Below the pieces are notes generated by a model, which did not search any database, was not told the DNA's origin, and saw nothing but the letters and a program-made list of their open reading frames with translations. Position numbers and translations under genes: made by a program. A stretch of DNA of 63,968 bases, counting the filler, from Lenisia limosa (Eukaryota; Protista; Breviatea): the NCBI GenBank assembly GCA_001655205.1. It is 14 parts of 14 records of this genome, joined end to end, with 100 filler letters (N's around TTAATTAATTAA, not from the genome) between each part and the next. Parts side by side here need not be neighbours in the genome. Positions count along the whole stretch, not along the records: positions 44,793 to 46,135 come from LPNZ01004623.1; 13 more parts are not named here. One strand, 5' to 3'. This document shows positions 44,793-46,135 of the stretch, one piece after another; position 1 is the stretch's first letter; every line of letters begins with the position of its first letter.

Positions 44793-46135
44793 CCTCTTGT
44801 TCAACATGCCAGATCTGCAGGTCACGTGGGAGGTCGATCTCTCCCTCAGCAATATGACGAAGGAGGGTGGTCTTGCCAACTCCCTGGGGTGTAAGATGGG
44901 ACCACAGAAACAAAAAAACAGTATTATTTATGAAAAAATTCATTTTAAAAAAATAACACAAGAGCATCTTTGCAATCCCCCCTCCCCCCTCACGTTGCGA
45001 CCAACAAGGGCGTATCTTCCACCCATCCTAAGGGTCATTTGTCCGTTCTTCAACAGCTCCTGTCCACCAGCAACTGAGTCGTATTAGGGTTATTTCCAAC
45101 GTTTTTGTAAATAAGTTTCTTAGGACTTATAGTGATTATGTGGGGATTATTAGGGGTGAAGACAGTTAGAGATTAGGTTCGGCTGATGATAAGAGATAAT
45201 GTTCGGATGATGAGAGCGGATAATTAGAGATTATTCTCGGAATGTTGAGGGTGATTGAGGTTAAAGGCGATATTGGAATGACTAAAGTTGAGTTTAGCCT
45301 AGTTGAATATTCCTCCCATATTGTAGTATGGTTGCATGTAGTACGCAATGCTGAATATCACCACATTTACGAAACGTAGACGTAATATACATAGCAATGA
45401 GAAATAAAAAATAAAGTTGTATCTGGCCGAAGCCGTCCACGCCATCAAGCTTAAAAGAGTTATTATAATAAATATCCCAATCATTTGCCTTAAACTCTGT
45501 GCACACAGCTTTCTGCGTGCATCCCCAGAATATGCCCTCTCATACATAATTGAATGTTGTTAAGTTGAATATCGTTGCTACAGCCTCTTTCAGTGGCCCA
45601 ACGGAGGGGATCCTGGAATGGGTAACTGGTGTAGAAATGAACTTCTACCATTCCTATATGACCATATGTTGAAAAAAAAACAGGCATATGATATCATCTT
45701 ATAAGAGAAATTGATTGTGTAATATGGGAAGTATAATAATGTGAACGGCATGTTAATATTTAGCCACTTCGTTAACTCGAAAAACCAAGTACCCTCCCAC
45801 TTTGGTGAACCTCGAGATTTCTCCTCGCTCAGACAGTTTGACCATAGCCTAAAAAGGTCACAAAAACAGTACGGTTTCAACTTGAACGGCTTTGAGAGGA
45901 AACTATAAGTAGGGCTTCAGTTCGGTTCGAAAAAAGACTGAATTTCTCGAAAAATCCTCGAAAATTATTGATATTTAACCGGTATTTTTCGAACCGAAGT
46001 GAAGCCCCAACTATAAGACATAAAAATCATCATAAACATGATATCCCCCTCTCCTACGGCCTGTTTTTTCTCAGCATTGACCTTTTCACGCTTGGCACGC
46101 TTTTCGGCGTTTTTAGCGTCAGTAGCGGCGACTGC
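44793..46135 (-). CDS. ABCF3: ABC-F family ATPase (GCN20/ABCF3-like), partial
   Basis: DIQLNNIQL-FAGGQELLKNGQMTLRMGGRYALVGRNGVGKTTLLRHIA...QIWHVEQE. Confidence 0.88.
45394..45520 (-). repeat. Family H full-length copy 25 nt after a donor
   Basis: Minus strand GCACGCAGAAAGCTGTGTGCACAGAG...GGACGGCTTCGGCCAGATAC...TTTCTCATTGC. Confidence 0.9.
45912..46007. mobile_element. Family M1 MITE
   Basis: TA|GGGCTTCAGTTCGGTTCGAAAAA ... TTTTTCGAACCGAAGTGAAGCCC, 96 bp. Confidence 0.9.

Follow-up and report, generated by a model that had tools for sequence, protein, structure and literature searches.

The locus examined here raises the question of whether H, a short element lying in an intron of the breviate protist Lenisia limosa, is tied in its origin or its orientation to the 5' splice site that it adjoins, or is a repeat that sits in an already existing intron and is removed along with it. 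The window, i.e. the whole stretch of Lenisia DNA under analysis (63,968 nt, comprising 14 parts joined end to end with filler), had been predicted to hold a family of about 20 such elements, recognized by eye, which are almost always sense to the host transcript and can begin with a donor-like GT. The present analysis concerns the piece at positions 44793-46135 (~40% GC), which carries part of a minus-strand gene with one H copy.

The host gene and its introns

The exons of the piece were used as single queries, and exon E, searched alone, recovered two database proteins at 100% identity. The first, P0001, is a 66-aa ORF from a 1635-bp ENA contig. The second, P0002, is a 714-aa ORF from a Trinity transcript of Lenisia limosa (EukProt EP01086; lineage Eukaryota, Breviatea), which contains two ABC_tran domains and an ABC_tran_Xtn domain; among solved structures, its closest relative is human ABCF1 (4e-126). 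A tblastn search with P0002 against the piece returned five exon segments, each at 100% identity (Table 1). Judged by these matches and domains, the host gene is an ABC-F ATPase of Lenisia limosa encoded on the minus strand; the family assignment was made via P0002, as the single exons are too short and gave no match to Pfam. Since P0002 is derived from a transcriptome, both the direction of transcription and the splicing of intron 3, in which H resides, are experimentally backed. In the protein, the residues on either side of this intron read ..NNIQL(F) before it and (F)AGGQELL... after it. P0001, for its part, is a spurious prokaryote-style ORF (44793-44967, minus strand) that begins in intron 4, crosses exon E and continues into the intron beyond it. 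ORF fragments from other eukaryotes (P0003, P0009 and others) were considered as indicators of a shared intron position and rejected, for their starts proved to be internal methionines (P0011).

The introns of the piece are markedly strand-asymmetric in their composition: beyond the first 25 nt, their interiors (within 44884-46057, minus strand) have 11-18% G on the sense strand, compared with 27% for exon sequence. Toward its 3' end, intron 3 contains a degenerate tandem repeat (45124-45240) with a period of ~24 nt and 2 to 4 units (77-86% matches); here the plus strand shows a GC skew of +0.6 and the sense strand is very G-poor.

Table 1. Coordinates of the exons, introns, element H and associated sequence features in the ABC-F piece of the window.
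Feature	Position	Strand	Remarks
Exon A	46135..46058	-	tblastn with P0002, 100% identity
Intron 1	46057..45849	-	209 nt, GT..AG
Exon B	45848..45801	-	tblastn with P0002, 100% identity
Intron 2	45800..45613	-	188 nt, GT..AG
Exon C (DPLRWATERGCSNDIQLNNIQL + first base of F)	45612..45546	-	P0002 residues 183-205, 100% identity
Intron 3	45545..45074	-	472 nt, GT..AG, phase 1
Exon D ((F)AGGQELLKNGQMTLRMGGRYALVGRN)	45073..44994	-	tblastn with P0002, 100% identity
Intron 4	44993..44884	-	110 nt, GT..AG
Exon E	44883..44794	-	tblastn with P0002, 100% identity
Element H, 127 nt (GCACGCAG...TTTCTCATTGC)	45394..45520	-	sense to host gene
Spacer between donor and H, 25 nt, G-rich (GTATGAGAGGG...GGGGAT)	45521..45545	-	resembles starts of other three introns
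5'-terminal hairpin of H	45500..45521	-	9-bp stem (one G-U), 4-nt loop
GGC-UUCG-GCC mini-hairpin	45425..45434	-	3-bp stem, z -0.65
T-rich 3' end of H, T6 run at 45406-45411	45394..45416	-	sequence reading
AATAAA in H	45403-45408, 45410-45415, 45467-45472	+	two of three within T-rich 3' end
TATGTAT, upstream copy	45542..45548	-	spans exon/donor junction, includes donor GT
TATGTAT, downstream copy	45387..45393	-	abuts H on 3' side
G-rich intron starts	46033-46057, 45776-45800, 45521-45545, 44969-44993	-	four introns of the piece

The ends, folds and class of the element

H is non-coding, with a GC content of 39%. It lies on the minus strand, as does its host gene, so that this copy has the predicted sense orientation, albeit as a single instance (n=1) without statistical weight for a bias. 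Its predicted placement 25 nt past a real donor is likewise borne out, with the GT of intron 3 at 45545-45544 and the first base of H at 45520. The weak inverted repeat that had been described at its ends is present in 8 of the 11 terminal bases, a match equalled by 1.5 per 1000 shuffles with the ends fixed; it does not extend inward (8/20). After the T-rich stretch, the 3' end of the element reads CTCATTGC.

These ends were compared with those of the known classes of short mobile elements. The hallmarks of MITEs are terminal inverted repeats and a flanking target-site duplication. H resembles them in being small (127 nt), AT-rich, non-coding and intronic with imperfectly inverted ends. However, the latter are far weaker than those of the neighbouring M-type MITE in intron 1 (at about 45902-46015), with its 31-nt inverted ends (87%) and flanking direct repeat CTATAAG of 7, possibly up to 9, nt. 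On both strands this M element also has sub-threshold matches to miRNA precursors (MIR319 and others; Rfam, 33 bits versus a gathering threshold of 54), which simply reflect its hairpin. At the boundaries of H itself (45520/45394) a target-site duplication is absent, there being only a 2-nt AT match that is offset, and no transposon superfamily can therefore be assigned to it. A strong orientation bias would also be atypical for MITEs. Helitron-derived elements are marked by a 5' TC, a 3' CTRR that follows a subterminal hairpin, and insertion between A and T; in H there is a plus-strand hairpin near the 3' end, no CTRR within 30 nt and a 5' end other than TC. SINEs, in turn, have a polymerase III head that descends from tRNA, 5S, 7SL or snRNA, end at the 3' side in a tail of A-rich or simple-repeat sequence and are flanked by duplications. 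H displays no such tail and no flanking duplication, and neither ARAGORN, which found no tRNA-like part, nor Rfam detected a polymerase III head in it. We accordingly file H as a putative small interspersed repeat of unclassified type, from a lineage with undescribed repeats; a literature search found no paper on the repeats or introns of Lenisia or other breviates.

The same features bear on the idea that insertion of H is itself strand-specific and coupled to transcription or splicing, for instance through an RNA intermediate that enters the transcribed strand, such that its copies are born sense. The bias reported for the family, the sense orientation of the present copy and the lack of a boundary duplication are in line with such a mechanism, and the T6 run on the sense strand could end a polymerase III transcript. 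Against it, H has neither a poly(A) nor a simple-repeat tail and no head resembling tRNA, 5S, 7SL or snRNA, we know of no partner reverse transcriptase for it, and nothing in a single copy demands this route, which we consider quite improbable.

In terms of RNA structure, the hairpin with a GGC-TTCG-GCC core that had been pointed out in H is present, yet its 3-bp stem does not rise above shuffles. To this description we add a 9-bp hairpin at the 5' terminus of H, which begins 24 nt past the donor and is the only fold of the element above shuffles (-13.7 kcal/mol, z -3.65, 1/200 shuffles as good). The strength of this hairpin and its nearness to the donor could be taken to mean that H is a functional RNA, for example a small RNA carried by the intron or a hairpin that regulates splicing. 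However, the fold of the whole element is not above shuffles (z -1.0 to -1.2 on the sense strand, -0.5 on the antisense strand). An Rfam scan with E-values up to 10 recovered no family, its single match (23 nt, E 7.7) being meaningless, and inspection of the sense strand by eye found no C/D box pair (no CUGA). Moreover, genes for small RNAs are not usually dispersed families of many copies, and a functional RNA is in our estimation highly improbable.

Searches for further copies bear on whether H is a repeat family at all, rather than AT-rich intron sequence over-grouped by eye, or is far rarer than supposed. ORFs through H (two sense frames and one antisense) found no relatives in a word search of 5.8 billion proteins, in collections that hold almost no Lenisia DNA; chance ORFs crossing H had no credible Pfam domain, and an 82-aa ORF through it had no usable match in the ESM Atlas. 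A two-part H pattern matched 2 metagenome, 2 prokaryote-genome and 0 viral contigs, with alignments that end where the pattern does and are thus due to chance. Two more H patterns and an end of the M element gave chance matches or none among viral contigs. Taken at face value, these protein, DNA-pattern and ESM Atlas searches, none of which produced a second H copy, would favour the absence of a family. Yet the collections barely contain any DNA of this organism: only one contig of the host locus, the above-mentioned one of 1635 bp, is on record at ENA, and blank searches for H are therefore weakly informative. The conserved termini quoted for the family in the original prediction, in contrast, match this H copy exactly, and we find it very doubtful that H is no family.

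G-rich intron starts and the likeness to introners

The predicted association of H with donor-like sequences has to be viewed against the other introns of the piece. All four open with GT and continue with sequence rich in G: this base accounts for 46% of positions +3 to +25 as against 14% of the remaining intron sequence (p=2e-11, Fisher test), GGG runs are present in 4/4 introns, and in 3/4 GGGGAT lies no more than 25 nt from the donor. Their opening strings are GTAGGAGAGGGGGAT, GTGGGAGGG, GTATGAGAGGG...GGGGAT and GTGAGGGGGGAGGGGGGAT, and P0001, whose residues VGGGV read into the next intron, would by its codons imply a fifth G-rich start. As all four introns share this feature, the GT and the G-rich stretch before H appear to be the look of any Lenisia donor and not a mark of H; by the same token, any H copy that happens to lie near a donor would seem to 'start with GT'. 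The claim of a special link between H and 5' splice sites is weakened. In Lenisia limosa the G-rich start may itself be a splicing motif close to the donor, and it could mislead anyone looking by eye for elements that seem to open with a donor sequence.

This is of consequence for the proposal that H is introner-like, i.e. a mobile element that made intron 3 upon inserting into an exon, with the intron being lengthened later. The 5' splice site would then either be part of the element or derive from the target sequence duplicated upon insertion, and known introners can indeed take a splice site from such a duplication (PMC9860276). The surroundings of H offer a possible counterpart, in that a 7-nt direct repeat, TATGTAT, encloses 21 nt plus H, with the donor GT contained in its upstream copy. 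Further, like the introners (the Micromonas IEs, the fungal introner-like elements and the families of Gozashti et al. 2022/2025), H is short, non-coding, genic, sense-oriented and situated beside a real 5' splice site, and the Micromonas elements are likewise found in transcribed regions only and in the sense orientation only (PMC3879977). The host intron is also the longest of the four (472 nt versus 110-209 nt for the others), and later insertions may have lengthened it.

Several observations speak against this proposal. First, the 3' end of H at 45394 falls 320 nt short of the acceptor of intron 3 (45074), and intron 3 is therefore not simply a copy of H. Introner screens demand similarity up to both exon-intron boundaries and discard secondary insertions in old introns (PMC12130899); in this copy the element and the intron do not coincide, with 25 nt of intron before H and 320 nt after it. 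Second, the G-rich string after the GT is common to introns without H and need not belong to it. Third, the other introns of the piece have no significant similarity to H: intron 4 and the rest were considered as decayed copies and rejected upon local and global alignment in the same orientation against shuffles (p=0.12-0.8). Finally, the direct repeat was spotted post hoc and has a shuffle p of only ~0.02; it fits an insertion just inside an old intron equally well as an introner-type insertion. On balance, an introner-like origin of H appears unlikely.

A 13-nt inverted repeat (85%) was also seen in this intron, between the donor-proximal ATGAGAGGGCATA (45531-45543) and positions 45210-45222, 308 nt downstream; it could delimit a larger element with H inside, or be due to chance.

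Possible selection on orientation and the significance of H

We hold at about even odds (a probability of roughly 0.5) that H, a putative short non-autonomous repeat, sits in an ABC-F intron that was already there, with any sense bias of its family arising from selection. Counting for this passive reading are its residence in a transcript-verified intron, of which it makes up 127 of the 472 bases, and the lack of any Rfam, tRNA or domain match or of an overall fold above shuffles. H would be removed passively along with intron 3, and the sense bias of the putative family, if real, would stem from purifying selection. The original prediction had itself named avoidance of the AATAAA on the antisense strand as an alternative account of the bias, and this hexamer is indeed found there in three copies, with none on the sense strand. 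The antisense strand further bears an acceptor-like site, where a pyrimidine tract leads into CCCCAG at the junction of H with its flank, which has no equivalent on the sense strand. With an antisense H, the pre-mRNA would thus contain three AAUAAA signals as well as a CAG preceded by an acceptor-like pyrimidine tract. Avoidance of poly(A) signals is therefore physically possible, with the proviso that the poly(A) signal of breviates may differ, in which case the AATAAA in H may not matter in Lenisia. The proximity of H to the donor, in turn, would be explained if insertions are better tolerated on the donor side of an intron than on its acceptor side.

Both parts of this account have parallels in mammals. 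Transposable elements within 20 bp of exons lie preferentially on the donor side; among human SINEs close to exons, sense copies prevail because the cryptic acceptors of antisense copies are selected against (PMC3088655). Alu and other mammalian SINEs would thereby be comparable to H in having an orientation bias explained by the cryptic signals of one strand together with a donor-side preference (PMC3088655). They differ from it in that H has no recognizable polymerase III head or A-rich tail, and the host in our case is a protist of the Breviatea whose introns measure 110-470 nt.

Several points count against the passive reading. The searches produced no second copy, so that H is a repeat only by the original prediction; a target-site duplication is absent from its boundaries; and the TATGTAT repeat that includes the donor GT suits an introner-type insertion just as well. 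A further point is the bias, if it truly is as near-absolute as 19/20, since this exceeds what selection usually yields for short elements.

Breviatea is a deep-branching lineage near animals and fungi, and if the H family were indeed confined to the sense orientation and linked to donors, Lenisia would join the organisms with introns made by mobile elements and would provide an example of such an element leaving part of its intron unfilled. In its fullest form this would make H the first mobile element of introner type, or coupled to splicing, in Breviatea, one that occurs only in the sense orientation, inserts at a 5' splice site or supplies one along with the G-rich motif, and has seeded many Lenisia introns; we rate this as rather improbable. 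If, instead, the bias just reflects the purging of copies with poly(A) and acceptor signals, H would be an ordinary small repeat. Standing either way are the transcript-supported placement of this piece in Lenisia limosa and the tendency of Lenisia introns, as it appears from those seen here, to open with a G-rich motif.
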